Positions 1 through 62,140 of a DNA stretch of 64,000 nucleotides are shown piece after piece. Location: NCBI GenBank assembly GCA_002269645.1, contig NIVC01000387.1, positions 62,001 through 126,000 on the forward strand, read 5' to 3'. Below the pieces are notes generated by a model. It did not search any database. It was not told where the DNA came from and worked only from the letters and a program-made list of their open reading frames with translations. Source of the DNA: Macrostomum lignano. Lineage: Eukaryota. The translations under genes and the position numbers were made by a program. How positions within the stretch are numbered: the first letter of the stretch is position 1; each line of letters begins with the position of its first letter.

Positions 1-27294
<27,294 letters not shown>

Positions 27295-28392
27295 TACAAA
27301 GTCATGACAACGGTTACTTTAAAGCAAAAGTGAGAAATGGTAATTTAGAAAATTATTTAAGCGTGTCTAATCTAGCATATTATGTATGATTAATACATAA
27401 TACAATGTGTCTAACAACTACAATACATGTACTACAGTACAGACTTCAATTTTAGTAGATTGGTTTTGGGACATCAAGCGGAAACTTTTTGGGGTGTAGT
27501 TCATGGAAAATGCAAATGGAAAATAAATAATCGAGTATAATAAAGTTGGTTCCGCTTCCTAATTATTTAGTTTTACTTCTTTATCTTATTCACAGATTTC
27601 ATACTTTACAACACTTTAATAAAGAGTGAACCTTAACTTTCGAAATTTTAGACTAAATTGGTGCACTAGGGTATGCAATATGCATGTGTTATGTGCATCC
27701 ACAAAATTATAGCATCTAGGAATCCCTCCCGTCTGCTGCTCAGGCAACCTGTGAGGGACTCCGCCGCGGCCAGGCTCGCTGCACCACTGACTGACACCTT
27801 TCTCTCTGACTCAGGTTCTGGGCCTTTGTACACTTCAGTCTGCAGCTATACATTATAGGCTCAGCTATACATGTAGTACTATACAGCAGTTATGAATGAC
27901 ATCTGATGCACCTGAAACTTTTCAAGGTCGGTCGGAATTTGAAAACCTTATATACAGAGCCAGTCTATCGAAGGGCTGTGATATTCTGTGATCGAAGGGC
28001 TCATTTACAAGACGTTTTTGTTGGAAAGACAGTTTTCTACTATCGTATTACATATACATGTATTTTTGAGTTTTTATTTCAGACGTAACCTATACAGACA
28101 CTTAAGTTTTAGCATTGCATAATATTGTAGCACTTCAATGAATCATGTTAATCATGAATTTCTTTTTTTAAGTTGCAAATGCACTTTAGTGCTAGCAGAG
28201 AACCTTCAGTACAAAGCAAAGAAAAGAAAGGGGGTTTCGGCCATAGACTTAAACAAAAACTGTACCCGCCAGGACCACTCTGATAAGGCTCGCGATAATA
28301 CAAGAAAGTGAGAGGGTTAAGAGACTTTGAAACGGCAGCTGGGCAGCGATTCATTTAGCTTTTTGCAGCTAAAATCGAAATACTCGTTGACC

Positions 28393-29757
28393 ATGCGCGA
28401 GTGCATCTCCATTCACATTGGCCAGGCTGGCATCCAGATCGGCAACGCCTGCTGGGAGCTCTACTGCTTAGAGCACGGCATCCAACCCGACGGCATGATG
28501 CTGGCGGGTATGAGCAAGTGCGACAATACGAGCGAACCATTTTTCTCTGAAACCAGCTCTGGAAGATATGTTCCACGAGCGCTATTCGTGGACCTGGAGC
28601 CCACCGTGGTCGACGAGGTGCGCACCGGGACCTACCGCCAGCTGTTTCATCCGGAGCAGCTCATCTCGGGCAAGGAGGACGCCGCCAACAACTACGCCCG
28701 GGGTCAATATACGGTGGGCAAGGAAATAATCACTCCGGTACGAGACTACTTGAGCAAATTGGTCGAAAGCTGCAGCAGTCTGCAGGGTTTCATTGTCTTT
28801 CACTCGTTTGGTGGCGGCACCGGCGCCGGCTTCACCTCCCTTCTGATGGAAAAACTCTCCTCTGAGTACGGCAAGCGCTCCAAGCTTCAGTTTTCTATCT
28901 ACCCTGCGCCGCAAATTTCTACGGCTGTTGTGGAGCCAATGAACGCAATCCTTTGCAATCACGGCACGATTTCGCACGCCAACTGCACTGTTATTGTGGA
29001 CAACGAAGCTATCTACAGCATCTGCCGGAAGAACTTAGACATTGAGAGACCAACGTACACAAACCTAAACCGGCTTGTCGGCCAGGTTGTCTCCTCAGTA
29101 ACGGCGTCATTGCGATTTGAAGGTTCACTGAACGTTGACCTGTCCGAGTTTCAAACTAATCTGGTGCCCTACCCAAAAATCCACTTCCCTTTGGCGACGC
29201 TGGCGCCGATAATATCTACTGACAAAGCAAACCACGAGCAGCTCAGCGTTGGAGAGATTACTAACTCCTGTTTTGAAGTGTCCAGTCAGATGGTAAAGTG
29301 CGATCCTCGGCACGGCAAGTACATGGCCTGCTGTCTGCTCTACAGAGGCGATGTCTCGTCGAAGGAGGTCAACGAGTCCATCCAGAAGATCAAGAACAAG
29401 CGAGAGATTCAGTTTGTTGACTGGTGCCCGACCGGCTTCAAAGTCGGCATCAACAACCAGCCGCCTACCACAGTACCTGGCGGTGACCTCGCGAAGGTGC
29501 AGCGATCGCTCTGCATGCTGAGCAACACCACCGCCATCGCTGAGGCCTGGGACCGACTTGCGTACAAGTTCGACCTCATGTACTCAAAGCGCGCCTTCGT
29601 GCACTGGTACGTCGGCGAGGGCATGGAAGAGGGCGAGTTCGCCGAGGCCCGCGAGGACCTGGCCGCTATGCAGAAGGACTACGAAGAGGTTGGAGTGGAC
29701 AGCGTAGAGGGCGAGGAGGAGGAGGTCGAGGAAATGGAGAAGGATGGCGATGACTAA
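28393..29757 (+). CDS. TUBA: Alpha-tubulin, divergent, intronless (copy 1, 454 aa)
   Basis: MRECISIH start, [34 protein letters not shown]; ends EKDGDD; single ORF. Confidence 0.96.
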
Positions 29758-31505
29758 AGCTGCTATCTTTTTTATTTAATATATTTTGTATCAACAATAT
29801 CATTGCTATTTTTTCGTCGAAGTTTTTTGTCATATGGGCGAGAATAAACGCACATCAACTATGCACTTATTGCGTTTGATATAAGAGTTTTGCGTCAATA
29901 TTTTGCGTACACAGAGGCAGAAGTGCACCAGACCATATTGTTCAGCTGATAAGAACGTAGCTAGAAGAAAAGTCACAAAATAGCTTTCTAGTAATGGATC
30001 ATGAACAAGCCAAAGCGAGCCATGGAGCCCGAAAAATTCCCGAAGGTTAAGCTCGGGAGGTGCATTGCTTCGATGGCATTGCTTCGACCATACAAGGGTT
30101 ATATTCAGTTAAAAATTAAAAATGAGATCTAATGCAACAGACCGATGTTTTGCTAAATTTGTTTGAGGTGTTCTACGAGTAAATGTTGTATTTTCTGCTT
30201 CCGTCCGTGCGGACCGCAGACGGGGCGATCAGGGGTTCGGGTACTGGACTGCCCAGAGCTTGCCGGGTGGGATAGGCGAAAGAGTGGCGACCCCCGAGGC
30301 GTACGGACACTTCGAGGTGGAGGTGGAGAGGCTGGGAGCGTACAGACACTCGGCCAGTCTCACGGAGAGAGGGAGATGCAGATGAGGAGGCTGTGAGCAG
30401 GTAGCCACTCAGCAGCAACAGCAGAGGTGAGCACGGGTCGGGAGGCGTGCAGACACTTCGCAGACCCGAAGGAAGACGGTGGCGAGAGAGGTGAATAATG
30501 AAGACGGGACAAATTAACGGAAGCGAACGCTGTCTTACCGGGCTGGGTCACTTGTCGCGCTCATGCAGGCGTGGCCTCTAATATCTCAGCCTCAGTTGAC
30601 TGTATTTCAATTTCAAGCTTCACTTTCACTCAAACACGTGTAGAGCTAGAGTGGTAGAGAGAGAGCAGGAGGGCGAGAGCCGGGCGAGGGCCGCGCGCGC
30701 ACATAAATACTGGGTGAGCACTGAGCAGGGGACTGGGGTGGGGGCAAAACTCAACAGAGTTGAAGGGCGAGAGGGAAGGCTAGCCAATCAGGTGCCTCCG
30801 CGGCGAGACACATGATTGGACTAGCCCACGCGAGAGAGAGATGAAAATACGCCAGCCAATGAAAATGTGGGCTGATGAAAATGAGAACAAAAAATGAATA
30901 GCAGCTTTAGACGGAGGGGGCAAGCCAGAAAAAACCAGTGGCAGGGAGAGGAGGGGCGGAGAGCTCAGAGGTCGGGGCAAGGGCATTGCGAGGCGCAGCT
31001 CACAACATAAATAAGAAATGAATGAGCCTAAAACTTGCATGAAATATCCAGAGTGACACTGGCTCGTGCCGCTTCCTGGGGAGCGAAGCGCCTCTCTGGT
31101 AAGGATTACCTGATAAGGCGTTTGGGAGATTTGTGTCAGGGCTCGGGTCTGGCTTCACTTAAACGCGAGGGTGATCAGTGTGACAAAGTGGTCATGTCAG
31201 AAGCGGACACCCTGAACCTGAAGTGTAGATTGGCTGGCCAATCACTGTTAGCGGGATCGGGGGTACTTGCTGCCACTCCCGCGTTTGGGGTGGCGTCGGC
31301 ATGCGTCTGTTTGGGTGCGCATCGGCATTGGGGGAGGGTAGCTTTTTAGCCCGTGCGTTGCTTTGTCTCTCTTTGCTGGGTTGCGTGCCTTTTGACTTGC
31401 GAATTTGAGCCGGCCCACTTATTCAAAGCTTTCTGTGCACTACGAGTTTGTGTAGGATGACTTTAGAGCAGCGACATGTACCTGAAGAATGAGAGATAGA
31501 GATAG

Positions 31506-31760
31506 AGCCCTGCCAAACTCAATGCACTCGGAGACGCACTGCGGAGATGCGGGCATCAGCGCGCCATCAGCAATCGCAACGTTCAGCGGATATGCGGCAA
31601 GCTGTCCTGGGTTATAAATGTGACCAGGAAAGGCCAGGCTTCTACTCGCTCACTGCTAACGTTGGCGAGCCGGACGACTAGACCTGGTGACAAGTTGCGG
31701 CTGCCTGCGCAGCTCAGCGAGTTGCTGCATTGGTGTAGAAAGAAGCCTCCAGTCAGTTGA
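31506..31760 (+). mobile_element. Relic of a DIRS/Ngaro-like (tyrosine-recombinase retrotransposon) RT-RNaseH region
   Basis: Open frame SPAKLNALGDALRR...VQRICGKLSWVINVTRKGQASTRSLLTL...RPGDKLRLPAQLSELLHW resembles, from memory only, the segment following the RT core in DIRS-type pol. Confidence 0.4.
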
Positions 31761-32305
31761 CTGCCAACCTGGCCTCACTACGGTATGCTCTTGAAAGATC
31801 GTCATCGAGACTGACGCATGCATCTCAAATGGGGCCTGCAAAAAATCACACAAGATGTAGAAAATTCGATGGCAGTGCGAATTCTCCTTTGACGAGTGCA
31901 CGAGCACAAGAGCTTCCGCAGAAACTCCGCATAGAAAAAAGAGACAGTAGACGATTCGCGGGGCGCAAGATTTCTCGTCATTTATAAATATTTGTCTTTC
32001 ATTTTTGTTCGAAACCAGACAGCAATATTTCGTACACTTTTATTAAATACCGGCGCATTGATAGCCGTTGACAGTGTTTAATGATAGAGGTGCAGTTCCG
32101 TAATGCATCTTTACCAATACAAAATGCTTTAATTCAAAGTAACGAAAGTGTATAAATAGTGGATTAGCTTTACCAAAAGCATACTGTTTAACAGAGTATT
32201 GCAGGTGTGCAGGTGATACGATATAAAGAAATGGGGGAGGCGACACTCGGTACACCAGTAGCGGTGCCTGTTTTTGTGGAAATGTTGGGAAATGCGACTG
32301 GACTG

Positions 32306-33673
32306 TCAGTCGGCTTCCGCATCCCGATCATTCTCCTCGACCTCCTCCTCCTCCCCCTCTACGCTGTCCACTCCGACCTCTTCGTAGTCCTTCTGCATAG
32401 CGGCCAGGTCCTCGCGGGCCTCGGCGAACTCGCCCTCTTCCATGCCCTCGCCGACGTACCAGTGCACGAAGGCGCGCTTCGAGTACATGAGGTCGAACTT
32501 GTACGCAAGTCGGTCCCAGGCCTCAGCGATGGCGGTGGTGTTGCTCAGCATGCAGACCGCTCGAGGCACCTTCGCGAGGTCACCGCCAGGTACTGTGGTA
32601 GGCGGTTGGTAGCTGATGCCGACTTTGAAGCCGGTCGGACACCAGTCAACAAACTGAATCTCTCGCTTGTTCTTGATCTTCTGAATGGCCTCTGAAACTT
32701 CCTTGCAGCTGATGTCGCCTCTGTAGAGCAAACAGCAGGCCATGTACTTGCCATGTCGAGGATCGCACTTCACCATTTGATTCGACGGTTCGAAGCACGC
32801 GTTAGTAATCTCGGTAACTTTGAGCTGCTCGTGACTTGCCTTCTCAGTCGTGATGATCGGAGAGTAGGTGGCCAGAGGGAAGTGGATCTTCGGGTAGGGC
32901 ACCAGGTTGGTTTGAAACTCGGCAATGTCCACGTTTATTGAGCCGTCAAAGCGCAATGAAACGGTAATCGAGGACATGACTTGTGCGACGAGTCGGTTCA
33001 AATTCGTGTACGTGGGCCTCTCAATATCCAGGCTTTTTCTGCAGATGTCGTAGATAGCTTCGTTGTCAACAATCATGCCGCAGTCGGAGTGGCGGATGGT
33101 TCCGTGCATGCACAGGATGGAGTTGTAGGGCTCTACCACGGCTGTGGACACCTGCGGAGCCGGGTAAATAGCCATTTCTAGTTTCGGCTTCCGGCCGTAC
33201 TCTGAAGACAGCCGGTCCATCAGCAGCGAGGTGAATCCTGATCCTGTGCCGCCGCCAAAGGAGTGAAAGACGATGAAACCCTGCAGACCAGAGCAGTTTT
33301 CTACCTGACGATTGATGACCTCCCGCACATAGCCAATCACCTCTTTGCCGATGGTGTACTGGCCGCGAGCGTAGTTGTTGGCGGCGTCCTCCTTGCCGGA
33401 GATCAGTTGCTCCGGATGAAACAGCTGGCGGTAGGTGCCGCAGCGAACCTCGTCAATTACGGTGGGCTCCAGGTCTACGAACACGGCCCTGGGAACGTAG
33501 CGGCCAGATGAGGTCTGGTAGAAAAACGACTCTTGCGAGTCGTCGCACTTCTCCCGGCCTGCCAGTAGCGCGCCGTCGGGCTGGATGCCGTGCTCCAGGC
33601 AGTAGAGCTCCCAGCAGGCGTTGCCAACCTGCACACCGGCCTGGCCGATGTGGATGGAGATGCACTCGCGCAT
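32306..33673 (-). CDS. TUBA: Alpha-tubulin, divergent, intronless (copy 2, 455 aa)
   Basis: MRECISIH start, [19 protein letters not shown]; ends DRDAEAD; single ORF. Confidence 0.96.
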
Positions 33674-34474
33674 GCTTGAAGCAGGTTGTAAACGTACACT
33701 GGGCTGCGGCTCAAGAGGCTTAGACCTACGGCAGGGTTAAAGGCTCGCTTTCTGAGAGGCTAGAAATTGAACCCATTGACTGCGAATTTGGTGGCTAGCC
33801 GTGGCTTTATCGAACTGAGTGTACAGGATAATTTCATTGCGGTCTATGGCAAAGACTATATGGGCTCGTTTCGAGTGAAAATCCTGGCTGCGCTGCGCTG
33901 CGAGATGAACTTTAAAATTCTAACTCGATACAACTCTGGCTTATAAATTTTCTAACTGGTTATAACTCTGGTCCATAACATTCGGCCTTTACGAAATTTT
34001 ACAGTATGATAAAATACAATTATCCAATGGTCTGTATCACATTTTAGGCAAATTAAACGGAATAATCCATATAACAAGCATTAGTCCCAAAAATTTTAAA
34101 GTTTTTTATCGCTTTCTTGATCCGCTTGGTTTTAAACTTTCAGTGTTGATTTCCGTATCAGAGGAACATAAAATCAAATGACTACTGCGCTTAGTGTCAC
34201 AAAATATAATCAGTCACTATTAACAAGTAGGCACTTTAAAAACCGATGTACCCTCGAGCTAAAAGTGCAAGCAGGCTTTTTATATATTATCTGACCAGCG
34301 CCAGCGAATAAGTCTACGCGTTGGCCATAGACGTAACCCCGGGGCCTGTAGCGACAGTGGAGCTTGAAGAGAGGGGGTGCCCGGGGGCAGAGAGATTTCT
34401 CATCATTCCCACCGGCTTACCGTGCCAAGCCACTTGTTTCGGGAGCAAAAGTCCGAAAGTCCGCACTGACAACC

Positions 34475-35839
34475 ATGCGCGAGTGCATCTCCATCCACGT
34501 CGGCCAGGCCGGCATCCAGATCGGCAACGCCTGCTGGGAGCTCTACTGCCTGGAGCACGGCATCCAACCCGACGGCATGATGCTGGCAGGCCGGGAGAAG
34601 TGCGACGACTCGCAGTCATCGTTCTTCTCGGAGACATCTTCTGGACGCTACGTTCCAAGGACGGTCTTCGTGGACCTGGAGCCCACCGTGATCGACGAGG
34701 TCCGCACGGGCACCTACCGCCAGCTGTTCCACCCGGAGCAGCTGATCTCCGGCAAGGAGGACGCCGCCAACAACTACGCCAGAGGCCACTACACCATCGG
34801 CAAGGAGCTGATTGGCACTGTTCGGGAGGTCATCAACCGGCTGGCGGAGAACTGCTCAGGCCTGCAGGGCTTCCTGGTTTTTCACTCCTTCGGTGGCGGC
34901 ACGGGCGCCGGCTTCACCTCGTTGCTGATGGACCGGTTGTCGTCCGAGTACGGCAAGCGGGCGAAGCTGCAGTTCGCCGTCTACCCGGCGCCGCAGGTGT
35001 CTACAGCCGTGGTGGAGCCGTTCAACGCCATCCTGTGCACCCACGGTACTCTAAGACACTCGGACTGCGGCATGATCGTTGACAACGAGGCCATCTACGA
35101 CATCTGCAGAAAAAGCTTGGACATTGAGAGGCCTACGTACACCAACCTAAACAGACTCGTCGCCCAGATCGTGTCCTCCATCACGGTTTCACTGCGGTTC
35201 GATGGCTCGCTCAACGTGGACATCACCGAGTTCCAGACAAACCTTGTCCCATATCCGAAAATCCACTTCCCCCTAGCCACCTACGCTCCCATTATTTCAA
35301 CGGAGAAGGCAAATCATGAGCAGCTGAAGGTCAGAGAGATCACTAATTCGTGCTTCGAGGCGAGCAACCAGATGGTGAAGTGCGATCCTCGGCACGGCAA
35401 GTACATGGCCTGCTGTCTGCTCTACAGAGGCGATGTCTCCTCGAAGGAGGTCAACGAGTCCATCCAGAAGATCAAGAACAAGCGAGAGATTCAGTTTGTT
35501 GACTGGTGCCCGACCGGCTTCAAGGTCGGCATCAACTACCAACCGCCTACCACAGTACCTGGCGGTGACCTCGCGAAAGTGCCTCGAGCGGTCTGCATGC
35601 TGAGCAACACCACCGCCATCGCTGAGGCCTGGGACCGACTTGCGTACAAGTTCGACCTCATGTACTCAAAGCGCGCCTTCGTGCACTGGTACGTCGGCGA
35701 GGGCATGGAAGAGGGCGAGTTCGCCGAGGCCCGAGAAGACTTGGGCGCCATGCAGAAGGACTACGAAGAGGTCGGAGTGGACAGCGTAGAGGGCGAGGAG
35801 GAGGAGGTCGAGGAGATGGAGAAAGATCTGGACGATTAA
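34475..35839 (+). CDS. TUBA: Alpha-tubulin, divergent, intronless (copy 3, 454 aa)
   Basis: [11 protein letters not shown] at 34475 (the ORF track extends upstream from a non-ATG codon), [19 protein letters not shown]; ends EKDLDD. Confidence 0.96.
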
Positions 35840-36913
35840 AAAGCCACTATCACTTTCAATCCTGTAGATAACATTGCACATAACGCGAGCTCTATGCCAG
35901 CCATATTACTTTACCGATACCTTAGAGCGATGTTCCTTTTCTCTCAGGAGAGAAGCAGCGCGCCGCAGCCAGTGCGTGCACGAGCTTCAGTGCTACTCGC
36001 TCTCTTGTGTGCCAACTCGTGTGGAGTTTCCATTATTCAACCGCACCTGTCAAACGTTAGTTAGTTTACACTTGTCTTGGCGATAGTACCTGCTATCAAA
36101 GGAGTCGCTTAATTTACTACATATTACGTTCTAAATACAGCAAAAATAGACCCGGCATTCTGTCATTGGCAGCTTTCTTGCAGTCAAATGTGCTTTTTCT
36201 TCCGTCTCTTAAATGTTGTACATACATGTCGGTCGGCTAGCATGAAAGCTTTAGAATTTTAATCCAGTACTGAGACTGGATCTGTCTATTAAGTGTACGA
36301 GTTCAATGTGTGAACTTTAATACTTCATTTTGGAAGTAAATGAGATTAGACCGAGACTGCTCTGGTGGTTAATGAATTTATGCTGACAGCGATAACACAG
36401 TTGCAGACTCGAGATGCTACAATTTACTAAAATATTTTTGTATTTAGCTGTGTGCTCCTGCTTGCAGATGAGAGTTCGGGAATGTCGCGCAGGAAATCAC
36501 TGGAGTATTCAACAGTATATCACAGATCGGTAAAATTTTCGATTATATCATTGGAGTTATACATTAAGGACATTTTTTGGCAAGCACAGTAACGTAAGCC
36601 TGTAACACGAAAAAAGTTTGAATTTTAAGGTAGAAGCTCCAAATAAGTGCTTGAAAACATGGCTGTGTCAAGGACTACTCAAGTAACATATATATCTTGG
36701 GCTGTGCATGCAACTCATATGTTTACAGATAAGCAAGCAAGACAGCTGCACGAAAGCACGAGCTTAAAGGTGCAAGACGGAAAGTTTGGAGTGGTACACG
36801 ACTGTGAAGTCGAGGTCTGCTGAGGAGGCAATCTACTGCTGCCTTCACAACCGCGGAAACTTTGGCCTGGAGGAGCTTCATCTGGCCGAACGGACCTCGG
36901 TTGGGTTATCACT

Positions 36914-37785
36914 CAGTCAGAGTGGGTGAGTGTGTGGGGCTGGTCTCAGACAGAGTGGGTGAGTGTGTGGGGCTGGTCTCAGCCAGAGTGGGTGAGTGTG
37001 TGGGGCTGGTCTCAGACAGAGTGGGTGAGTGAGTGGGGCTGGTCTCAGTCAGAGTGGGTGAGTGTGTGGGGCTGGTCTCAGACAGAGTGGGTGAGTGAGT
37101 GGGGCTGGTCTCAGACAGAGTGGGTGAGTGTGTGGGGCTGGTCTCAGACAGAGTGGGTGAGGGTGTGGGGCTGGTCTCAGACAGAGTGGGTGAGTGTGTG
37201 GGGCTGGTCTCAGACAGAGTGGGTGAGTGAGTGGGGCTGGTCTCAGTCAGAGTGGGTGAGTGTGTGGGGCTGGTCTCAGACAGAGTGGGTGAGTGAGTGG
37301 GGCTGGTCTCAGTCAGAGTGGGTGAGTGTGTGGGGCTGGTCTCAGACAGAGTGGGTGAGTGTGTGGGGCTGGTCTCAGTCAGAGTGGGTGAGTGTGTGGG
37401 GCTGGTCTCAGACAGAGTGGGTGAGTGAGTGGGGCTGGTCTCAGTCAGAGTGGGTGAGTGTGTGGGGCTGGTCTCAGACAGAGTGGGTGAGTGTGTGGGG
37501 CTGGTCTCAGTCAGAGTGGGTGAGTGTGTGGGGTTGGGCTCAGCCAGAGTGGGTGAGTGTGTGGGGCTGGTCTCAGACAGAGTGGGTGAGTGTGTGGGGC
37601 TGGTCTCAGTCAGAGAGGGTGAGTGTGTGGGGCTGGTCGCAGACAGAGTGGGTGAGTGAGTGGGGCTGGTCTCAGACAGAGTGGGTGAGTGAGTGGGGTT
37701 GGTCTCAGTCAGAGAGGGTGAGTGAGTGGGGTTGGTCTCAGTCAGAGAGGGTGAGTGAGTCGGGTTCGTCTCAGCCAGAGTGAGT
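36914..37785. repeat. 33-bp G-rich minisatellite (CAGAGTGGGTGAGTGTGTGGGGCTGGTCTCAGA), ~26 copies
   Basis: Direct reading. Confidence 0.96.
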
Positions 37786-37903
37786 TTCGATAGGTAAATG
37801 TTTACAAAATTTTCAAATAAAAAGCTTCAGCTGCATTCGCAAGACTGAACTCTCGGCTTCCATTATTGCCATCAGTGTTCAGCAGAAGTCGGGGCTGCTC
37901 AGC

Positions 37904-40900
37904 TCACATGAGGCTGCAGACGCCAGATGAAGCTCTGTTGCTTTTCCGGCGTATTTCGTCCAGGTCGTTGCGTCTGGCCCGCCGCTTGTTGCCCTCCACG
38001 TAGAAGGTGTGGCGGAACCGGCCGTAGGCCAGCGGAAGGCTGCGATGAGGAGGGAAGGCGTAGCGGTGAAGACAGCGGCTGATAGCCTGAATGCAGCGAT
38101 GTCTATTGAATGCATTTCCAAGATGGGTGGGATTAATGAAGGTTAAGGTGGAGGAAGCTCACCCACTGAAGGATCGGGCTGCGGGTAGCTCACCCACTGA
38201 AGGATCGGGCTGCGGGTAGCTCACCCACTGAAGGTTCGGGCTGCGGGAAGCTCACCCACTGAAGGTTCGGGCTGCGGGAAGCTCACCCACTGAAGGATCG
38301 GGCTGCGGGAAGCTCACCCACTGAAGGATCGGGCTGCGGGAAGCTCACCCACTGAAGGATCGGGCTGCGGGAAGCTCACCAACTGAAGGATCGGGCTGCG
38401 GGAAGCTCACCCACTGAAGGATCGGGTTGCGGGAAGCTCACCCACTGAAGGATCGGGCTGCGGGAAGCTCACCCACTGAAGGATCGGGCTGTGGGTAGCT
38501 CACCTACTGAAGGATCGGGCTGCGGGAAGCTCACCCACTGAAGGATCGGGCTGCGGGAAGCTCACCCACTGAAGGATCGGGCTGCGGGTAACTCACCCAC
38601 TGAAGGATCGGGCTGTGGGTAGCTCACCCACTGAAGGATCGGGCTGCGGCAAGCTCATCTTTGGTTGCTTTAAAAGCTTGACAAGCATAGCAAAATAGCT
38701 GCCTTATCTTTAGTCTTTCAATTTAAGGAAATAAAAAATTGAAAATGGCGTTCGCTAATAATGGCCACTTTGTTAGTCTTGATCGGCATGATTCAAAGTT
38801 CAGGGAATACTAGCACAATCAGAAGCATGCAGGCTACCCGACAAGTCCATTAGAGACGATGTCGCAGCGAATCCATTGGATTGCAACATTTTTATTCTAG
38901 AATGAACCCAAACTTTTATTTATACGATTTCATCTGCAAATCAAGATGGATAATTAATAATCCACACTACCATCTGATAAGATTTAGATTTGGCTATCGA
39001 CTCCAAAGCGACCGTCACTCACCGAGCAGGGACCAGCGCAGCGAGGTGTCTGCTATGAGCTCGGTTGGAATGGGGAAAAAGGATAAAGAACAAAGGATAA
39101 GGATTTGTTTTATGGCAGTTTAGACAGACAGTTGTAGCCTAGTGGTTAGAGCGTCGGACTCACGACTGAAAAGTCGGGGGTTCGAGTCTCGAACCACGCG
39201 GAACAATTTGTGTTGACACTTAACTCTGCATTGCTTCAGTTCGGCCAGCTGTAAAATGTGTGCCTGCATTGGCTCATTTTGGAAAGAAATTTAGGGAAAA
39301 ATTTTCACAATTTTTTTGCATTCTTCCCGTCTACTCAAGATGTCGTCCTAGGGTGGTTGAGACGTCAAGAACTAATAGTTAGTTAATCCAGGGCCATAAA
39401 ATTGAAACACAGCCAGCGATGTCTCACTTGTCGGAGCCGGGCCGGATCTGCAGGCTGATGACGGCGTACACCGCCCGGTGATCGGAGCAGCGCAGCTCGG
39501 GTACGCTATTGTACGCGGTCACCGTGGCGCTGCCGGGCTTGCGACAGCGATAGAGGACCCGGTCCTGGACGGGCGGACAGTCAGGCAGGTGCGCAGGTGA
39601 GTGCATAATTTTTTGTAGCTGTGTAAATCAGCTGCGCGATTTTATGACCCCGTTTGATGGCGGAGTGAAAAAATCGCCCTTAGTTTTTGAAATACTTGAA
39701 TAAATCAAATGCTTTCTGTTATATGCTTCTTGTGATGTAAATTAGCCGCGCTGGTTATGACAGAATGGATGCTAAAATTTACATGTTGGTCGCCGATGTC
39801 ACAAAAGTACTTTGATGCGGTGCAAAGCTCCTGCATGTACACGTGTGCGAAACGGATGTACGCCGATAGTTGAATAGAACTTCGGTGTTCTTTAGAGACG
39901 TGTGTGTTCATGGGGGCGATCCTGACTCAGTGGTTAGGACCCGTTGACAACAAGTAAGAACTCAGAATCCGGTCATGAGGCCGATCGCGAGTTTTGGACA
40001 CAGTTGTAGAAGCTCACCGTGGTTACCTGTCTGGGAGTCGTTCCCGGATCACCTGCGTGAAACCTGGGATTCTCACCGCTAGATCACAACTCACAGTCAC
40101 TTTCGATTTCGAACCAAGGCTGCAATTATGTGATGGTGAAAACTCCGCAGTTTCCCTCAATTTTAGCCTCAATCCCGCCACGGTAAATCCTCCAACTCAT
40201 CTACATTTTATTTGTGGCTCTTGCGTAGGTAAACTTTGCACCAATGCAATTTTAGTGCTGCTTTGACAAAGAAAGTACTTCCATGACAATAAATAGTACT
40301 TTGTGCATCGTCTCAAGAGCCTACCGTGTAGCTGGGCACCCGCTGCTTGCCCGAGGTGTCGTAATTGTCCGTGTCGATGTCGAACTTGTAGGTAGGCGGG
40401 AAGCGGATGTCGCCCTCTAGGAAGTGCTCGAACACGCGACCCTCGGCCTGCGCCATTTTGAGTTCGTCGACGGCTGTCAGCCGGTCGGAGAAGTTTTCGC
40501 CCTGCAGCAGGCGGTCAACGCGTAGCCGGCTGGACTCGCCGACGCGTAGGCGGAAGTTCAAATCGCCGGCCCAGAACACGTAGTCGAATCGCTCTGTGAC
40601 GTCATCGCCTGGCGGATATTGGAAAGACAGATATGGAATGTTATTCGCGACTGATGGCGGTAGACATGACATCAGGGTGGCTGCACAAAAGTCGAAACCT
40701 CTGCTAAATTGGGGCAAAAGTTCATCAGCCACAGGGTCTCGGTATGGCTTCAAAGCTGAACGTCGGCGCTAGAATGCCGAGATGAACAGACGAGCTGCTG
40801 ACAACGATGACGCTCCGTCACCAGTTTTGACATCAGAAACACGGGCCCTTCTTAAGTCCCATCTTACTGGCTCAATAAATAGGCCCTCATAGTATGAAAA

Positions 40901-43077: not shown

Positions 43078-44538
43078 CTGATAGTCGGCCAGAAGAAAAC
43101 AAATAAAGCGCTTTAAAAAAATCAAATGTTATGGTAATGCTATATATATCTAATATCTACATTATTTTCGAAGTTTTTTAAAGAAAGCACGTTTCGTATA
43201 ATATAATCTCTTCCGCTAAGTAATGAGTCATTTTTAGCAGTCTAAAAAATTCCATGCTTTATATTATTCTAATTTCTTTCCTCGTGTTGTGAAGTGGTCC
43301 TTGTGAAAAATCTAATAAGAATACAAAGCAGCCGCGTCAGATTTTGTTTTGCTTATTGCACTTAATGCAAAGCCAGCCTATTGTTGTTGTCTACAATTTG
43401 TCTTCAACAGCCTATTGTTGGTGTCTATTAGAAACAGCACATAAAACCATTGTACATGTAATTTGTTAAAATTATGATAATTTGCACATTGAGTATTATG
43501 AAAGAGTGTAGGTGAGCTGAAGAAATAGGTAAATAGTGTGACTTAAACTGCTTACATATTAAACTCATTAAATACGAGCTAGATTTCTCCACTAAATGGG
43601 AAATCTTGATTTGGTTTTCATTCAGTTGATGTCTATTTATTCTAGTGTATGACATGTGATTTTTTTAGAATTTTAATTTTTATCTACTATAGTTTAATAC
43701 TAAAGGGACAAGGCTTTCATGACTTCCATGAAATTTTGATGAAAACGTGATGCCTCATGGGATTTGGGAGACTGGTCAAAAGTATAAAAACACAAAAAAT
43801 GCATGTATTGGTAGTTCTGAAAAAAACATCGATACGCTGAGGAAATTTACAAGGTAAGAAATAGTAGTTAATCGAACTGAGAGTGTTCGATAAAAATAAT
43901 TGCTAAATACTCTTTAAGAAAAAAACACCTCTTAAACAGTTTTACAAATCTAAACTATACCGCGGTTTGTGTGCATCTAATCTAAGTATCTTATAACTAA
44001 AATCAAAAGCAGCTACAGTTCAAATATTTTAATTTAAATAACCAATCAATAATCGGGGCCAACCTCCTCTGGCCTATAATAAACTACGAAAAGTCTGTTA
44101 TACTGTTGATTAGAAGAAGCAGAGCACTATATTTCGGTAAAAATGCATATTGTCCGAAGTTAAAATTGTTTAGAGTCTAATGAAAGCAAAAATAAACTGT
44201 GTTGGTTAAAAATATTGATAAATATTGAATAAACAGTTTTTAAATTTATTTCTTTGACATTTAAAGAAAAGATTAACTCTCTTTGCGCTAGTAAAATGTT
44301 TTCTTTGTTATTTTAATTAGACTTTTAATGCCGTATACAACCCCAGGGACATTGCACTTACAGCGTGTATGTACGTCGGCCGCAGCTACACAGCAGCCTG
44401 AATTCTACTTGATTGAGTTCACTTTCACTATGCCCTCTACTACATGTAATGCTAATTTTAGTCAGCAACGTGTATCTATGTAATGTAGTTAATCACAAGG
44501 CCTAAAAAGATTTTATAAGCAAAATCAGTAATTTCTAG

Positions 44539-44650
44539 GGTTATCCTGAAGATTCCCGCGTTTAATTATAACCCCCACCCCCCACCACCCTTGAATATAG
44601 GGCGAAATAATTCCGTAAAATAATTAAACGCGGGAATTTTCAGGATTGCC
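44539..44650. mobile_element. 112-bp MITE with 31-bp TIRs and 8-bp target-site duplication ATTTCTAG
   Basis: Left end GGTTATCCTGAAGATTCCCGCGTTTAATTAT; reverse complement of right end GGCAATCCTGAAAATTCCCGCGTTTAATTAT (3 mismatches). ATTTCTAG at 44531-44538 and 44651-44658. Confidence 0.8.
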
Positions 44651-45924
44651 ATTTCTAGGCCTGCTCAACAGATAGATGCCTAGTTGGCAATGCCAGTGGG
44701 CATATATTAATATACTAATAGGCCTACCTTCTTGTACCTTTTTGTACCTACCTTACCTTACCTTCTACCTTTATTTTGCTAGCTAGACATAGGCCTAGTC
44801 AATATGCTCTTGTTTTGGTCTATTATATTTCAATTAATTTATTCTTGCTTTTTGTATTTAATGTCCACTTATATAAGTTATAATTATATCTTGAGCAAGA
44901 GAAGTTAAAAATGTGTAAGCCTATGGCTATAATTAATGCAATTAATTATAAGCCATGACTTTATAAGTTAGGCCCCTACTTGAATTCAATGACAATCAAA
45001 TTAAAATTTTAGTTAAGTTTTCTTTGTAAAATTTGCTTATTAGGCCTAATTACTATTATAAATAACTATATTTAAGTGGGTAGGTAGGTAGGCAGGCATG
45101 GGCAGCCAGAAAGACTATCCCTTCCCTTTATGGCTACTTGGCTGGCAATTATGCCAATGTCAATGATAGGGCTAGATAGGCCTACCCCTTTTCCTTTGGG
45201 TTAATAGTCCCATCCCATGGTCCTACATATTATTATTATTATCAATTTTCTAAACTATAATACTTTGAATCTATAGACAATGATTAAATCCAAAACAGAA
45301 AAAAGAAAAGTGCTAAAAGTTGCTTAGCGAACTTAAAAAGGCCTAAGCTTAGGTCTTTATCAAAAAATGTTTGCCCTCTATTTGTTTAGGCCTAGTATAG
45401 TACCTATGCATATGTAATCCCCCTGATTTACATTGGCTGTGCAACTTACTTTTTGACCAAAAATGCAACTTACTTATGAAAGAAACCCTTAAACAAAATT
45501 AACACAATTTTGGATAAATAGTAAGAGTAGCTGATTGTTTTATTAAGGCTAAATGGCTTATTATCTAATTTGTAGGCTTACTATATCTGTATTTAGGGTG
45601 GCCATTTTCGCAACTTATCTCATTTCCTAGTTAACCATAATTTATAGTGGCCAGATTGGCCAGGTTAGCCAACAGTTGTGCATATATGATAGTACCTTTC
45701 TAATATAATAATATTTATAGTGTTCTTCTAGTTTATTTTAGTATCTAGTATATATTATAGGGCCCTCCAATGTATAATATAGTTATAATGCCCCTACTCT
45801 TATGGTTAAGATTTATCCCCTTATTTTGTGCCAATGGAAAAATAAAAAAGGGTAGATAAATAATAAATGTAATATAATGTTTGTGATATAAAAAATATAA
45901 ATGGGATATATTTCTAGAGTAAAG

Positions 45925-46050
45925 GGATTGGTGGTTTGATTCCTAATTCCACTGAAGCAAATTGTATCCTTGAGCAAGACATTTAAGTTTGCATTGCTTT
46001 ATTTATCAGTTCACCTAGCTGTAGAATAGAATGGGTGCCAGCATTAGCTA
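45925..46050 (+). mobile_element. Degenerate CORE-SINE-like relic
   Basis: GTATCCTTGAGCAAGACATTTAA...TGCATTGC...CAGTTCACCTAGCTGTA...AATGGGTGCC resembles the CORE domain and the copy at 39.2 kb. Confidence 0.55.
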
Positions 46051-46508: not shown

Positions 46509-47422
46509 GACTCGAGCCTGGACCCGCAGTCGCCTGGTGGAGAGAACCGCCCTGTGGGCCAGCACTCCCCCATCCGTGACCAGGACCGCTTCCTGCCCAT
46601 CGCCAACATATCGAAGATCATGAAGCGGACCATCCCGGAGACTGGCAAGATCACCAAGGAGGCCAAAGAGTGCGTGCAGGAGTGCGTCTCCGAGTTCATC
46701 TCCTTCATCACCTCGGAGGCCTCCGACCGGTGCCAGGATGACAAGCGCAAGACTATGAACGGGGAGGACATCCTCACCGCTATGCAGGTGCGGCTGCGGA
46801 TTTCACTGTGTTGGCTGTGCCGTCTTTTAAACGCTGCAGTCCATATCAGGGCTTTGGAATCTGGGAACTTGGAACACTCGACAGACGCGACCCTTCGTAG
46901 GTTCGGGCTTTGTTTCACAGAAGAGAGGCCTGACTAGCCAGCAGCATCCGTCCCGTAGCAACAAAAGTTTCTGATTTCCGGTCTTCAGTTTAAAGCAGCC
47001 ACTTTCGATCTATTTAGGGATCGAGTCTGCATTGATTTCTTGAGCATCATCAGCTCAACCTGCTGCAACAAGATTTGCTCAAAATTCTTTTATTACTACT
47101 AGTTAGCATTTAGCAAGCATATATCGATTTTATCCATGCACTTCAGGCCGTGGGCCTTGACAACTACATTGAGCCGCTGAAGCTCTACCTGCTGAAATAC
47201 CGCGAGGCCAACAAGCTGGAAGCGGCCAATGAGAGAGCTGGCAGCGCTGGCGCTTCCGCCTCGGCTTCCGGTTGCGTCAATCAGGACACGCCGTCCGCTG
47301 CCAGCTCTGCTGACGCCAGCGGTGCTGCTCTTCCGCCTTCCGTTGTTTCGGCGCCGACTGCCGTGACGCTGGCCGGCCTGGAGAATAGCAACGGCCAGGT
47401 GGTGTACCGGGTGATCATGTGA
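46509..47422 (+). CDS. NFYB: Nuclear transcription factor Y subunit beta (histone fold)
   Basis: Exons 46509-46787 ([17 protein letters not shown]...[18 protein letters not shown]...[10 protein letters not shown]) and 47147-47422 ([13 protein letters not shown]), phase-0 join. No ATG upstream of the histone fold in these exons. Confidence 0.93.
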
Positions 47423-47746
47423 CCCTGTTGCCAGGTGGTTGCCGGGTGATCATGTGACCCTGCTGCCAGGTGGTTGCCGGGTGATCATGTGACCCTGCTG
47501 CCAGGTGGTGTACCGGGTGATCATGTGACCCTGTTGCCAGGTGGTTGCCGGGTGATCATGTGACCCTGCTGCCAGGTGGTTGCCGGGTGATCATGTGACC
47601 CTGCTGCCAGGTGGTTGCCGGGTGATCATGTGACCCTGTTGCCAGGTGGTTGCCGGGTGATCATGTGACCCTGCTGCCAGGTGGTTGCCGGGTGATCATG
47701 TGACCCTGTTGCCAGGTGGTTGCCGTGATCATGAGACCCTGTTGCC
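47394..47746. repeat. 35/36-bp minisatellite (CCAGGTGGTTGCCGGGTGATCATGTGACCCTGCTG), ~10 copies, first unit overlapping the NF-YB stop codon
   Basis: Direct reading. Confidence 0.95.
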
Positions 47747-48350: not shown

Positions 48351-50067
48351 TCACAGCTCAGTCCGCTTCACGTCGTCTGTGCTGTCCAGCTCGCTCGGCT
48401 TCAGCTCGTAGCGCTCCTTGATGCCGACCACGCCGCAGTCCTCGATCATGATGCGCTTGCGCGGCACCGCCGTGTCTGGGTCGGAGGGCACTTCGCCGAC
48501 TGTCTTGACCACGTCCTGGTTTGGTTAGGTGGGAAAAGATGGCTGTTTAGTTCGGTTGAACTTGTTACTAAACCGATAATTGCTTGGAATCAACAGATTA
48601 AGCACTAAGCTTTCTGGACCCATTTCCTTTTGAATGCGTCTCTCTGAGCAAATCAAGAGACGCAGTCTTGAAATTTGCCCCGAAGGTCAAAGCCCGTTGA
48701 AAACGCTACCATGACAAGAATCTCAAAGGAGTCATTGCAGACAACTCACTAGTGACTCTATAGTGACTTTTTAACGACTGCAATGCGACGGAGAGGCGAC
48801 TGCAGTTTGCAGCTTGCAGTTTCGTCGTTTTAGAGTCGTAGTCGTCTAGAATGAGTTCCTATTTCACACGTTTTACCTGCAACGACTCTGAAAGATGGCT
48901 CTGGGACGCTTTTTGTCCTAGTAGGTTCCGTTTTCATGGAGAAGTGCTCTATTTGTGCATTGCAGCGGCAGTCTTCCGGAAGCCAATTTTTGCAATTGAG
49001 CGAGAGGACACCAAAAACAAAGAAACGTCTTAAATCATGGATTTTTCGAGTTCGATTCCGCTGAATGTGAAAGGAGTTAAACGGAGCCGAGATGTTCAAC
49101 ATCTGCTCGTCTGACTTGAAAATCCGACTAATACGAGGTCGAGACCCCGGGGCTTAAAATTCTTATAATCCTTAAGAAAAGAAACCTTAAACGATCTGGT
49201 TTGCTCTGGTGTCTTCAGTGCCCCAATTCTTCCAGATGCACTTACGAATCCCTTGATGACCTTGCCGAACACGACGTGCTTATTGTCCAGCCAGCGGGCC
49301 TTGGTGAGCAGGATGTAGAACTGGGAACCGTTGGTGTCCGGGCCGTGGTTGGCCATGGCGATCCAGCCGGGCGACCGGTGGGACAGGATGAAGGGCTCGT
49401 CGTTGAATCGCGGACCGTAGATGCTGGTGCCGCCGGTGCCGTCCCCGGTGGTGATGTCGCCCATCTGGACGACGAAGTCGGGCACCACGCGGTGCACTGG
49501 CGTGTTCTTGTAGTGCAGATTCTCGCCGCGGAACTTGTAGCCCCGGGCAAGCGACACGAAGTTCATTGTGGTCATCGGCGCGGCCTCGCCGAATACGGCT
49601 ACGGTGAACCTTCGGGTGCACGGCAAAGGTCAAATTTATTTATTCTTATGCTTATGAGCAGCGTGTTGCAGTGAAAGGGACTTCTAAACTGAAGTAGCTC
49701 GTACGCATCACACGGAAACATTCGTCTCCAGAAGTCCAGTTCTCTTAGCGAGAATTGTGATTACGCTTTGTAGCTTCTAGAGAGGAAAGACTTCTGAGGA
49801 ACTCCTTTTCTAAACGGCAGCGAATCCTAACTGAAAGTCCCATAATTTGGAAAGCGATAAATATTTAGAAGTCCTTTCTCGAATTTCTAATTTAACCTGG
49901 GGTACTCACTTTCCAGTGAAGTCTTCGCCGGGGCCGTCCATGTCCTTGACGCGGACCTCGAACCAGACCTCCTCGGTGACCGTGTAGTTTGAATTCATCG
50001 CACTGGCCTGCGAGGCCGCCCACAGGCAGGCGCAGCAGAAGACAGATAGGGCTAGCTGCAGTTTCAT
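48351..50067 (-). CDS. PPIB: Secretory-pathway cyclophilin (PPIB/PPIC-like peptidyl-prolyl isomerase)
   Basis: Exons 49910-50067 (hydrophobic signal peptide MKLQLALSVFCCACLWAASQASA), 49246-49609 (HRVVPDFVVQMGD, MANHGPDTNGSQF, WLDNKHVVFGKV), 48351-48515. Ends in RTEL, a KDEL-like ER retrieval signal. Phases consistent. Confidence 0.93.
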
Positions 50068-52636: not shown

Positions 52637-54014
52637 TGTTATGATAAATGCCAAGTCATGTTTGCGAGCGAGCGAGAAAACTCTTAGACCCAGACACTGG
52701 GTAAACACCGATATATATTGTTGAGAACTTCACTGTACATAGAAGGGATGGGGGCCAGTGTACACAGATGTACACGAAATTGCGAGAGTAAATAGTGCAC
52801 ACAAGCCGCACACAACACCTCCCAACATTAGTTAACGAATAATCCTACGAGTTCGAAGAGTAAAAGTAACGGAACATTAAAATGAAATATTTGTCCTTGC
52901 ATTGCTAAGTCGCACGAGATAATATTTAAATATTTGTAGCAAAGCAGGAATAAAACAAGGAATATTCCAACAATAAAGTTTCTCCCATTTATAGTATTGG
53001 GGCCAATACGCCATTACAGTCAATCAGTCAATCGCAATCAACTATCTGTTTGCAACTTGGGCCGTGGCGAGCATTCGGCTTCTCAACCGTCATGATAGCT
53101 GCTGCCGGAGCATCGCCGGCACAGTCAGCCTTGGAGTCCTCCACCAGCTCGTTGACCTTCGCTGAGCGGCACACGGACGAAAAATGATTCGTGCGACCAC
53201 AATTATTACAGGTCTTACCGTAGGCTGGGCACTTGCGCCGCTCATGTTGCTGTCCGCAGAATCCGCAGCTCCGAGCCGATCTGGCGTGGCCGACTGTCGC
53301 TTTGGCTCGGTTTTGCACGGCATCGACAGACGCTGGCGCGGATGAAGGCGCTGCTCGGCTGATCTGCGCAGAGGCCAGGGTCCGAGCCTGCCGCTTCGAA
53401 GTCTCTGATGCTCGACCCATCTGGATGCGCGATGATCCAAAGTCAGCTTCGTCTCTTGCAGAAATCTTTCCCTCAGAGCTGGGTCGTTGACTCCGATGAC
53501 GATCTCGAAAGACGCTGTTCTCGATTGTCTCCTCGTTAGCTGGCTTGCTGTAATTGCAGCGTTTGATGATCTGACGGAGGGAGCTGACAAACTGGTCAAA
53601 TTCCTCAGCTTCTCCTTGCACTTTTGTTCCGAGCTGGTAGCGCTCAAATGTTTCGTTTGACAGAGGCTCACAGTAGTCTTTGAATGCCTCGACTACCTTC
53701 GTCGTACGTAGCTACTTTGTCTGCAGGAAACAAATATCTTGACCGTCGGATCCGAGGACGGTTAGCAGAATGGCGACCTTCACATCGTTGTTTTCTTCAG
53801 TTCTCTTCGTAGCTTTCATATAAAAATCGAACGATTCGATCCACTTTCACCAGTTTTCCGCCCCATTGGTGTCAAAAACAATAGGCTCTGGCGGCCTCAA
53901 CCTTCCATGCTTGCCAGACTGGATAGGTAGTTTAGACTTGCGACGCCATGTTATGAAATAAGCCAAGTCATGTTTGCGAGCGAGCGAGAAAACTCTTAGA
54001 CCCAGACACTGGGT
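52637..54014 (-). mobile_element. Degenerate, internally deleted Ty3/Gypsy LTR retrotransposon (gag only)
   Basis: Full LTR 52637-53018 (minus strand TGTAA...TAACA). A 66-bp remnant of the other LTR at 53949-54014 contains an identical core of about 50 bp and is followed by a TGG-initiated PBS. Gag 53028-~53910 has LRPPEP, FERYQL and CGFCGQQH...CNNCGRTNHFSSVC zinc knuckles, with an in-frame stop and a frameshift. No pol. Confidence 0.85.
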
Positions 54015-57447: not shown

Positions 57448-59126
57448 TGCTGAAAAGTTGGTAGGATTCTTTGTCTCTCAAATAAATATAATATTGTAGA
57501 CAACTTATCGAGACTTGTTACACATTTTGTCACCCGTTTAGAAATGAACTTACTAAACATTAATTTTCTGTGAGATTATTCTCTGTCAGAAAAACTACCA
57601 CTAAAGGAGAGAGTTGTGCATTTCAGAAAATAAGAATCTGAACCTAAAGGGGAAAATCAGGCGGAAACCTTAGAAAAGTTAGGAATCAGCATCACCAGTT
57701 ATCAATAGTGGCAGCAATAATTTTAGAAATCAAAATAATGGTATTCAGAAATAAGAGGCATGTGACAAAAATAGTTTGTAAGTTTATTATTCTTTTTTCC
57801 TAGTCAGTTTGTTACAACTACTTAGTTTTCCTTAGTGAAACTGATTATACTGAATAATAATTAAATATTTTAACTAAATAGTATAAATATAATACCAGAT
57901 AATCAAGGTACAAAGGCTCATATTCCAGTTGATAATAAAATAACAGTGTTATTGAGCATCACTCAAAATAATGTTTCAAATTATTCCAAAAGTTCAAGCA
58001 CAATAAAATTCAGGATTTAAAAGCTTCGATATATAGTATTGCTTCGTATCAAAGCTTCGTATATAGTATTATCCTTTCAATTTAACGGTCTTTCAAAGTT
58101 AAAGCTTTAGCTAAATATAGTTGTATGCAACTGTACGAATGTCCATTATCTGATGGTGAAACTAAAATATGCTGATGGAAATGATGGACGCCATAATTTA
58201 CATAAGAATCATACAAGTCCAAAAAGCTCTATGAAAAATTTCTGAAACTCCTGCAAGTTGTATTAGAAAAACAACTAATACAGCGAACACCTATGAAAAG
58301 TCTAAAATCGACCAGATAAGAAAAATTATATATTTCATATTTTCGCGTATCTATGGATACAGTACATTCTCAAGAGCAGAAAACCACGGCTACATAAATA
58401 ACATAACTAATAACTAATTTTCATTTTATGTCACATTTGTTGTTTTCACTTAGTTACTTAGATGTTTACTAAGCATACAAAACGTTTGTTAATTTTACTC
58501 AAGATTTTTTAATTTTTTAATTTAATTTTTTCTGCAAAAAAGCTCCTGCATGCGTGCATGTGCATGCGCAACCATATTAAAGCTCTAAGCTCAGCTCCAC
58601 TTATTATTATCTATATCAGTAAGATATTATTATTTCATTATTATTACTGTTAATATTGAATATTATTTTTGTTACTTTTATTGAACAAAAAATTCACAAT
58701 TCAAGAATGACAAAAGCCCAAAAGGGAAATCCTAATCTTACCCAATCCGCCAATCCATTCCATAATAAATTAATACTTCTACTACTATATATAGTATTGC
58801 GCATTTATCATCATTTAAAATCATTCAATTAATTTCCTTTGTACACATACTGTAGTGTATTGAATATTTAATTTCGGGTTGAAAATCTTGCTCACCAAAT
58901 TTTAGCCTTTAGATTAGATAAAAGACCCAAATTAGAAGATTATTAAGAGAGAAGCAAATAATAAGTTTTTCATTTGCTGGTAAATAGTTAACTAATAATT
59001 CGTTTTTCTACTATTTATAACATTTAAATTGTTGCTGCATACCTAGCATAGACCTAGATAGAAAAATACAATAGGTTAAAACAATTATTTCCTTGGCTTA
59101 GATTGACATATAGCCATGGTATAGGT

Positions 59127-61534: not shown

Positions 61535-61985
61535 ATGGCAACCACTGATGCTAACAATGTGGAGCAGCTTCGAGCTCGAGTGGCCAAGCTGGAGTCCGAG
61601 CTGGCCGAACTTCGCCAGGCCCAGCCAGCCTCTGCTCGCCAACGAATCGACCGAATGTCCGCCGAGGTCGTGGACTCGAATCCCTACAGCCGGCTGATGG
61701 CGCTGCAGCGCATGGGCGTTGTGCAGAACTACGAGCGCATCCGCGAACAGGCCGTGCTCATTGTTGGCGTCGGCGGGGTCGGCTCCGTCACGGCCGAGAT
61801 GCTCACCCGCTGCGGCGTCGGCCGCCTCATCCTGTTCGACTACGACAAGGTGGAGATGGCCAACATGAACCGCCTGTTCTTCCAGCCGCACCAGGCCGGC
61901 CTCAGCAAGGTGGAGGCCGCCAAGAGGACCCTGCTGGGCATCAATCCGGATGTGCAGGTGCGTGGGCTGGATTGTTGTTCCTGCC

Positions 61986-62048
<63 letters not shown>

Positions 62049-62065
62049 ATGTATGTATGTCTGCC

Positions 62066-62104
<39 letters not shown>

Positions 62105-62105
62105 A

Positions 62106-62140
<35 letters not shown>

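Follow-up and report, generated by a model that had tools for sequence, protein, structure and literature searches.

The DNA examined here, called the window, is a stretch of 64,000 nucleotides of Macrostomum lignano (assembly GCA_002269645.1). It holds three alpha-tubulin genes, here A, B and C, which are the subject of this report. Gene A (28393-29757, plus strand) and gene C (34475-35839, plus strand) each encode 454 amino acids in a single exon. Gene B (32306-33673, minus strand) lies head to head with gene C and encodes 455 amino acids, also in a single exon. Open reading frames (ORFs) were counted from the methionine of the N-terminal tetrapeptide MREC. The original prediction for this DNA was a set of three intronless alpha-tubulins, and the ORFs lie exactly where it had placed them. 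Since each ORF is colinear with a canonical alpha-tubulin along its full length, the genes are intronless. Residues 1-445 of gene A align with residues 1-447 of TUBA1A (E 5e-249 against the solved TUBA1A/1B chains), with a 2-residue gap in the H1-S2 loop. Gene C has the tubulin Pfam domains PF00091 (E 2e-58) and PF03953 (E 4e-51). Gene A is the most divergent of the three.

Alignment places the shortened H1-S2 loop, the lumenal 'K40' loop, at codons 35-46 of each gene (28495-28530 on the plus strand in A, 33536-33571 on the minus strand in B, 34577-34612 on the plus strand in C). Translation and alignment both agree with the earlier claim that this loop is 2 residues short in all three and that position 40 is M in A and R in B and C. 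None of them has the S38-D39-K40-T41-I42 context of Lys40 that alphaTAT1 uses. The C-terminal tails, placed in the same way, are 17 residues long in A (29704-29754, plus strand), 18 in B (32309-32362, minus strand) and 17 in C (35786-35836, plus strand). The tail of A is rich in Glu, has a Lys and lacks a terminal Tyr or Phe; it closes with ...EEMEKDGDD and that of C with ...EEMEKDLDD. The ends DGDD, AEAD and DLDD of A, B and C are as previously quoted, and none is an encoded -EEY or -EEF or an -EE that a ligase could use. The genes also carry the strings HGT[IL][SR] and GGGTG[AS]G. The strings of shared substitutions that had been quoted for all three are present, except that one of 19 residues is exact in A and C only and reads otherwise in B. 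Between the divergent genes B and C lie 801 bp (33674-34474). This is a presumed bidirectional promoter, and it holds both the gene B and the gene C copies of an upstream motif described below.

A family of intronless copies

Exact-sequence look-ups traced proteins A and B to two further contigs of the same assembly, NIVC01003856.1 and NIVC01000225.1, both of which encode a protein identical to A. Scanning these contigs recovered the three-gene cluster on both, with the same A-B-C order, orientation and spacing. These other two cluster copies are flanked by a DOCK-family gene and an Exo_endo_phos gene. The 801-bp region between B and C is 97-99.6% identical in them, and non-coding DNA differs by 0.5-4.2% among the three cluster copies. 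That divergence rules out the window copies being assembly duplicates. It implies homeologous or allelic copies in a recently duplicated genome.

Public models of the cluster are partly chimeric (proteins P0244, P0245, P0246, P0251 and P0258 are involved). At 7839-15266 of locus L008 (one of the other two cluster copies) a 454-residue model spans 7.4 kb; its first residues come from A and its body from C. In older UniProt entries two neighbouring tubulins are run together as one protein of about 900 residues, and gene B is uncalled in the public annotation of NIVC01003856.1.

The cluster belongs to a larger family, which comprises at least 9 different protein types at a minimum of 5 loci. All are single ORFs, and each type has 2-3 genomic copies. 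Beyond the window cluster there are at least 6 single-exon paralogues at 4 or more further loci. Mlig025455 (locus L002), Mlig018767 (L003), Mlig006955 (L004) and Mlig030563 (L005-L007, on three contigs) are paralogues that were each seen as a single ORF. Mlig016797, Mlig007926 and Mlig019632 are paralogues found as protein-cluster members, and Mlig001535 is a further family gene identifier.

The family loop reads xxxGREK[CS]Dxx, with AGMSKCDNT as the variant of gene A. In the tail, VEGEEEEV[ED]E is followed by two residues that vary, by K or R (9/9 aligned family proteins) and by a short acidic end. That end is DGDD, AEAD, DLDD, DKDE, VGDD or ADGE, and a terminal Tyr or Phe is found in none. 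Against a panel of ten canonical alpha-tubulins, 34 substitutions are fixed across the family and absent from the panel. Those outside the loop include L119R, D127E, T190C, T193G, A247S, R264K, V275I, A333Q, T334K, A389D, D392A, H393Y, A400S, L428M and E429Q (TUBA1A numbering). D39G, K40R and T41E in the loop are scored as family-fixed, and the residues that flank the normal K40 target are all replaced. Identity to TUBA1A is 78-81% for the family and 98% for the canonical panel. Family members are 82-94% identical to each other as proteins (77-91% at the nucleotide level), which makes them far more diverged mutually than canonical alpha-tubulins are across phyla.

The working parts of the protein are kept. 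MREC is present in all family copies. Q11, N101, S140, T179, N206, Y224, N228 and E254 (TUBA1A numbering) are invariant in nine aligned family proteins. GQAG and GGGTG[AS]G are kept in the same nine, save for A12T in P0242 and the alternation of A and S. The earlier claim that MREC, the catalytic Glu and the N-site motifs are retained is therefore borne out by the alignment. The shared 2-residue deletion and the shared derived residues argue for a single origin of the family. It probably descends from one ancestral intronless copy that was then duplicated in tandem and to other loci.

Selection on the family

Pairs of paralogues have a ratio of non-synonymous to synonymous divergence (dN/dS) of 0.04-0.15 by the Nei-Gojobori method, with dS from 0.36 to 2.1, up to saturation. 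The cluster copies tell the same story at shorter range. When the window genes are compared with the other two cluster copies (L001 and L008), 122 of 122 nucleotide differences are synonymous and 117 are at third positions. Gene A has 11 synonymous and no non-synonymous differences from each copy. The synonymous counts against L001 and L008 are 31 and 21 for gene B and 31 and 17 for gene C, again with no non-synonymous change. The family is under strong purifying selection. Relaxed dN/dS, which had been named beforehand as a sign that would count against a functional family, was not observed.

It could be objected that these genes are processed retro-pseudogenes, or other non-functional duplicates of an ordinary alpha-tubulin. 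Introns are absent in every copy, compared with about 4.9 for the average M. lignano gene (PMC5730564), and there are many dispersed copies. However, every copy is a full-length intact ORF, and the selection values are those just given. The upstream motif is conserved, one member is testis-expressed in published tables, and there is no poly(A) remnant. The 600 bp that follow each of the three genes contain no run of at least 8 A, though this is weak evidence given that dS for the window genes is at least 0.6. We reject the pseudogene explanation on the intact ORFs, the low dN/dS between paralogues and the invariant functional residues, and we consider it very improbable.

The absence of introns invites comparison with testis-expressed functional retrogenes. 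The likeness lies in an intronless, dispersed family with testis expression in a genome that averages about 5 introns per gene. The difference is that a poly(A) tract or target-site duplication is not detectable here and an intron-containing parent was not identified. Retroposition can therefore be offered only as a hypothesis for the origin of the family.

A shared upstream element

The 9-mer GCCATAGAC occurs 3 times in the window, where 0.47 occurrences are expected. Each occurrence is upstream of a tubulin gene and in the same orientation. It lies 152 bp before the ATG of gene A (28240-28248, plus strand), 176 bp before that of gene B (33842-33850, minus strand) and 150 bp before that of gene C (34324-34332, plus strand). 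In the other two cluster copies the 9-mer has the same position relative to the genes, and L002, L003 and L004 carry it at -141 to -222. L005-L007 have only its reverse complement, at -262. The sequence around the 9-mer cannot be aligned between paralogues. We regard it as a candidate promoter element specific to the family, and as such it would drive the common expression of its members. An RFX X-box and a YY1 site were considered as identities for it, and the flanks fit neither consensus consistently, so no factor is assigned.

Two further observations were made on this motif. A CTGTA[CT]-like string often follows it 15-35 bp downstream. In L004 a tandem array (13650-14068 and beyond) repeats itself about every 41 bp, and its unit contains the 9-mer, with 20 matches in that locus; this array is 2.3 kb downstream of the tubulin gene Mlig006955.g2.

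Expression

Published expression data bear on the paralogue Mlig018767. Table S6 of Brand et al. 2020 (PMC7336406) gives Mlig018767.g2 the positional label 'Testis', the label 'germline_FACS' and the in situ hybridisation (ISH) pattern 'testes'. According to the same source, the ISH pattern was carried over from Ramm et al. 2019, where the probe was RNA815_5848.1. In the data tabulated by Arbore et al. 2015 (PMC4490696), RNA815_5848.1 belongs to class '+,0,0', with 969 counts for the head fragment against about 10,000 for each of the fragments in which the testes are included. Adding the region that contains the ovaries takes the counts from 10,257 to 10,205 in that data set. The tables of Grudniewska et al. 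2016 list TTLL-family genes with testes ISH patterns.

The forward primer of the ISH probe matches gene C (35085-35104) and the Mlig018767.g1 locus (L003) exactly, and gene B with two mismatches. Since paralogues are 77-91% identical in nucleotides, the 961-bp coding probe probably reports several family members. The original prediction had the genes specialised for one cell type such as sperm. The part of this that stands is germline use, in that one member is specific to the testis region and has a 'testes' ISH pattern in these sources. Sperm itself is something that we infer.

Distribution among animals

Homology and family-profile searches were run on a collection of 5.8 billion proteins clustered at 90% identity, and a metagenome scan was added. 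The closest proteins are all 'BOX15_Mlig...' entries of M. lignano. Canonical vertebrate alpha-tubulins follow at 80-81%. Neither the single-sequence nor the family-profile protein search found a family member outside M. lignano, and their match lists are identical. The metagenome scan returned nothing above 80% identity, its best match being at 80%. A query with a 60-residue fragment around the loop was uninformative, as its matches were all short fragments and did not even include the Macrostomum proteins. No paper describing the loop or the tail of this family was found in the indexed literature. All recovered members are thus from M. lignano, in keeping with the proposal of a lineage-specific subfamily. 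Other Macrostomum species are probably absent from the searched collections, so the family may be genus-wide or confined to the species.

A short loop without Lys40 and a tail without Tyr might simply be the norm for Macrostomum. In that case these would be general-purpose tubulins and not a specialised subfamily. This would explain why a canonical M. lignano alpha-tubulin turned up in no search, although the 90% clustering of the collection could hide one. Several facts speak against it. Multiciliated epidermis in other animals uses canonical axonemal tubulin. M. lignano glides on a fully multiciliated epidermis (PMC4799839). The tested member is testis-restricted, with counts about 10-fold lower in the head fragment as tabulated. 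Another alpha-tubulin-like transcript, RNA1509_19570, is listed as neoblast-enriched and not germline. The family is 19-22% diverged from TUBA1A, and a cestode protein (P0072) retains the canonical QMPSDKTIGGGDDS loop. We therefore hold a clade-wide norm to be improbable.

P0072 deserves a word of its own. In this gene model of Schistocephalus solidus (638 residues) a canonical alpha-tubulin runs on into the beginning of a second tubulin-like sequence, which is highly divergent (…IFLHIGGAGVQVGSQFWDIF…). Judging from this one protein, other flatworms may have divergent tubulins of their own.

Loops of other kinds are found elsewhere, and alpha-tubulins without Lys40 are common. Among 69 environmental alpha-tubulins, 15 have no Lys near position 40 and 14 have shorter loops. 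P0124, a 74-residue metagenome fragment of an alpha-tubulin, has the loop QLAISGRNSCDDSFNT. This is one residue short, has no Lys40, has a Cys directly before DDS, and is loosely reminiscent of the Macrostomum loop.

What the family may do

The comparison with canonical metazoan alpha-tubulin (TUBA1A/1B) sets the terms of the argument. The two Pfam domains, the end-to-end alignment, MREC, the N-site residues, Glu254 and an acidic tail are all shared. The family differs in its loop, which is 2 residues shorter and lacks Lys40, and in fixed changes that fall in H3, H5, T7/H8, the M-loop, H10, H11 and H12 among other places. Its tail exceeds the canonical one by about 5 residues, contains a conserved Lys or Arg, and ends in Asp or Glu instead of Tyr.

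The enzymology of the two classic marks is well defined. AlphaTAT1 acetylates K40, detyrosinating carboxypeptidases need a terminal Tyr, and tubulin tyrosine ligase needs an -EE end. Because the target Lys40 is not encoded, microtubules made from the family would escape K40 acetylation by alphaTAT1. The tail is unlike the carboxypeptidase substrate, with its terminal Tyr, and unlike the ligase substrate, with its -EE end, so these microtubules would also stand outside the cycle of detyrosination and retyrosination. The suggestion that the subfamily is uncoupled from the two main alpha-tubulin marks agrees with what the genes encode, namely neither the Lys40 target nor a C-terminal Tyr or Phe. 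The run of glutamates in the tail would still be available for glutamylation.

Each of these departures has precedents. Most alpha-tubulins of C. elegans other than MEC-12, and Tub1 of yeast, are naturally without Lys40. Like the Macrostomum family they lack the alphaTAT1 target and are still working alpha-tubulins. They are, however, unrelated lineages with other loop sequences, and the GREK[CS]D loop was not seen among the invertebrate tubulins examined or the 69 environmental ones. Mammalian TUBA4A has no encoded terminal Tyr and ends in -EE, which the ligase can use; TUBA8 has a terminal Phe. These too are genetically encoded departures from the -EEY end that alter entry into the tyrosination cycle. 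Unlike TUBA4A, the Macrostomum tails close with -KDxD[DE] or a string like it and resemble neither substrate of the cycle. Dedicated germline isotypes distinct from the housekeeping one are also familiar, such as beta2 (betaTub85D) and alphaTub67C of Drosophila and TUBA3 of mammals. Macrostomum differs in having an expanded intronless family of at least 9 protein types in place of a single gene.

We propose that the family proteins would pair with beta-tubulin in male germ cells and that the resulting dimers would build the microtubule arrays of spermatids and sperm. Macrostomid sperm are not known to have an axoneme and carry cortical microtubules. Sperm of that kind would suit tubulins that have shed the marks associated with axonemes. 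The sperm of M. lignano have a feeler, body, bristles, shaft and brush (PMC12896417).

A rival role in the germ line has to be considered as well. The family could serve germline divisions or early development, in meiotic or mitotic spindles as with Drosophila alphaTub67C, and not sperm structure. The published labels 'germline_FACS' and 'testes', as tabulated, have no resolution by cell stage. The testes also hold spermatogonia and spermatocytes besides spermatids (PMC12896417). Nothing decisive stands against the spindle role, although the tabulated counts do not rise with the ovary-containing region, which argues against a maternal or oocyte role. We consider the spindle role unlikely but well short of negligible, and we keep a use in spermatids and sperm as our proposal.

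The original prediction also treated K42-C43 as invariant and suggested redox or K42 regulation. Lys42 would then be a relocated acetylation site, or Cys43 a new redox or lipid-modified site, or both, giving the family a lumenal mark of its own. Lys42 is present in 9/9 distinct family proteins and Cys43 in 8/9. The pair is invariant within the window; in the wider family Cys43 is Ser in Mlig016797 (P0242). A Cys also occurs at the equivalent position, canonical G45, in invertebrate tubulins that keep Lys40, for example QMPSDKTIGGCDDSF in Elysia. These two facts leave the redox idea unsupported. As for Lys42, the flanks S38-D39-K40-T41-I42 of the normal target are all replaced. A new mark at Lys42 or Cys43 therefore seems improbable to us. 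In solved structures the H1-S2 loop is flexible. Gene C, modelled with AlphaFold2 from a 12-sequence alignment, reached a mean predicted local distance difference test score (pLDDT) of 33, which permits no structural conclusion on the loop.

A bolder version of our proposal can be stated. The family might constitute a dedicated, fast-evolving 'sperm tubulin code' for the elaborate sperm of Macrostomum, which reportedly do without an axoneme, with isotypes freed from acetylation and tyrosination, diversification by sexual selection, a promoter element of its own and maybe a lumenal modification at Lys42. We regard this as speculative and give it about the same low standing as the spindle role.

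Weighing the evidence

Our reading is that A, B and C are functional and belong to a multi-copy family of alpha-tubulin isotypes, with a probable origin from one copy, whose members in the searched collections all come from M. lignano. Our rough probability for this reading is 0.7. Several points weigh against it. Many of the synonymous differences that separate the cluster copies fall on sites shared by A, B and C, mainly at about 1023-1299 of the coding sequence (for example 1041, 1104, 1167, 1170, 1194 and 1299). The dS between cluster copies (0.04-0.11) also exceeds the adjacent non-coding divergence (0.5-4%). Both patterns suggest that gene conversion has acted between paralogues over the stretch in which they encode identical protein, the best-conserved stretch of the coding sequence. 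The recurrence of sites means that the cluster-copy differences are not all independent evidence of selection. This caveat leaves the dN/dS between paralogues unaffected.

The expression data come from a paralogue and a probe that probably cross-hybridises, and they are not specific to A, B or C. The reverse primer of the ISH probe was not found in the window or in the paralogue loci examined. A use in sperm rather than in spindles or other microtubules of testis cells is, as said, our own inference. The protein searches, where clustering at 90% could hide one, recovered no alpha-tubulin of the canonical kind with Lys40 from M. lignano, and it is on indirect grounds that we treat the family as additional to a canonical set.

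Neighbourhood of the cluster

Other genes in the window are of varied kinds. A DOCK C2 domain is encoded at 22265-23095 (minus strand), and a cyclophilin-type peptidyl-prolyl isomerase lies at 49096-49626 (minus strand). A radial spoke head protein (PF04712) has two exons seen within 55303-56799 (minus strand). A ThiF-family E1-like enzyme, probably UBA5, is at 61496-63115 (plus strand), and its ORF extends across a (CTGT)n microsatellite, probably an intronic one. An ORF at 53028-53621 (minus strand) has CCHC-like Cys/His spacing (…CGFCGQQHERRKCPAYGKTCNNCGRTNHFSSVC…) suggestive of a retroelement Gag remnant, with no Pfam match at E 1e-3.

Long minisatellite arrays are unusually abundant in the window, with units of 20-61 bp, up to 85 copies and 84-99% matches. 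They lie at 867-4883, 11860-14743, 16017-18865, 20166-23697, 36912-38657, 47394-47746 and 55025-55362. Many are upstream of gene A, where the minus strand encodes the DOCK C2 domain and where the other cluster copies have their DOCK-family gene. Microsatellites of the types (GACA)n, (TCTA)n and (CTGT)n occur as well. The repeat arrays create long spurious ORFs in several frames. G+C drops to 0.31-0.33 in three blocks of about 2 kb (26001-28000, 44001-46000 and 58001-60000), compared with about 0.5 elsewhere in the window.

Significance

These genes leave what is known of tubulin unchanged. Isotypes that lack Lys40 or do not end in Tyr are already established, as are isotypes specific to the germline. 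Tubulin isotypes and modifications are thought to tune microtubules for each cell type, and clean natural experiments are few. Here one genome has a large, selectively maintained family of alpha-tubulins that appear from their sequence unable to receive the two classic marks. The interest lies mainly in how large the family is, in its lack of introns, and in the RNA interference (RNAi) and transgenesis by which isotype function can be tested in M. lignano. The compact 801-bp divergent promoter and its GCCATAGAC copies could serve as a testis-specific driver in M. lignano transgenics. Since the animal is tractable (RNAi by soaking, transgenesis, transparent tissue), it is practical to probe in it the role of microtubules that would do without K40 acetylation and the tyrosination cycle.

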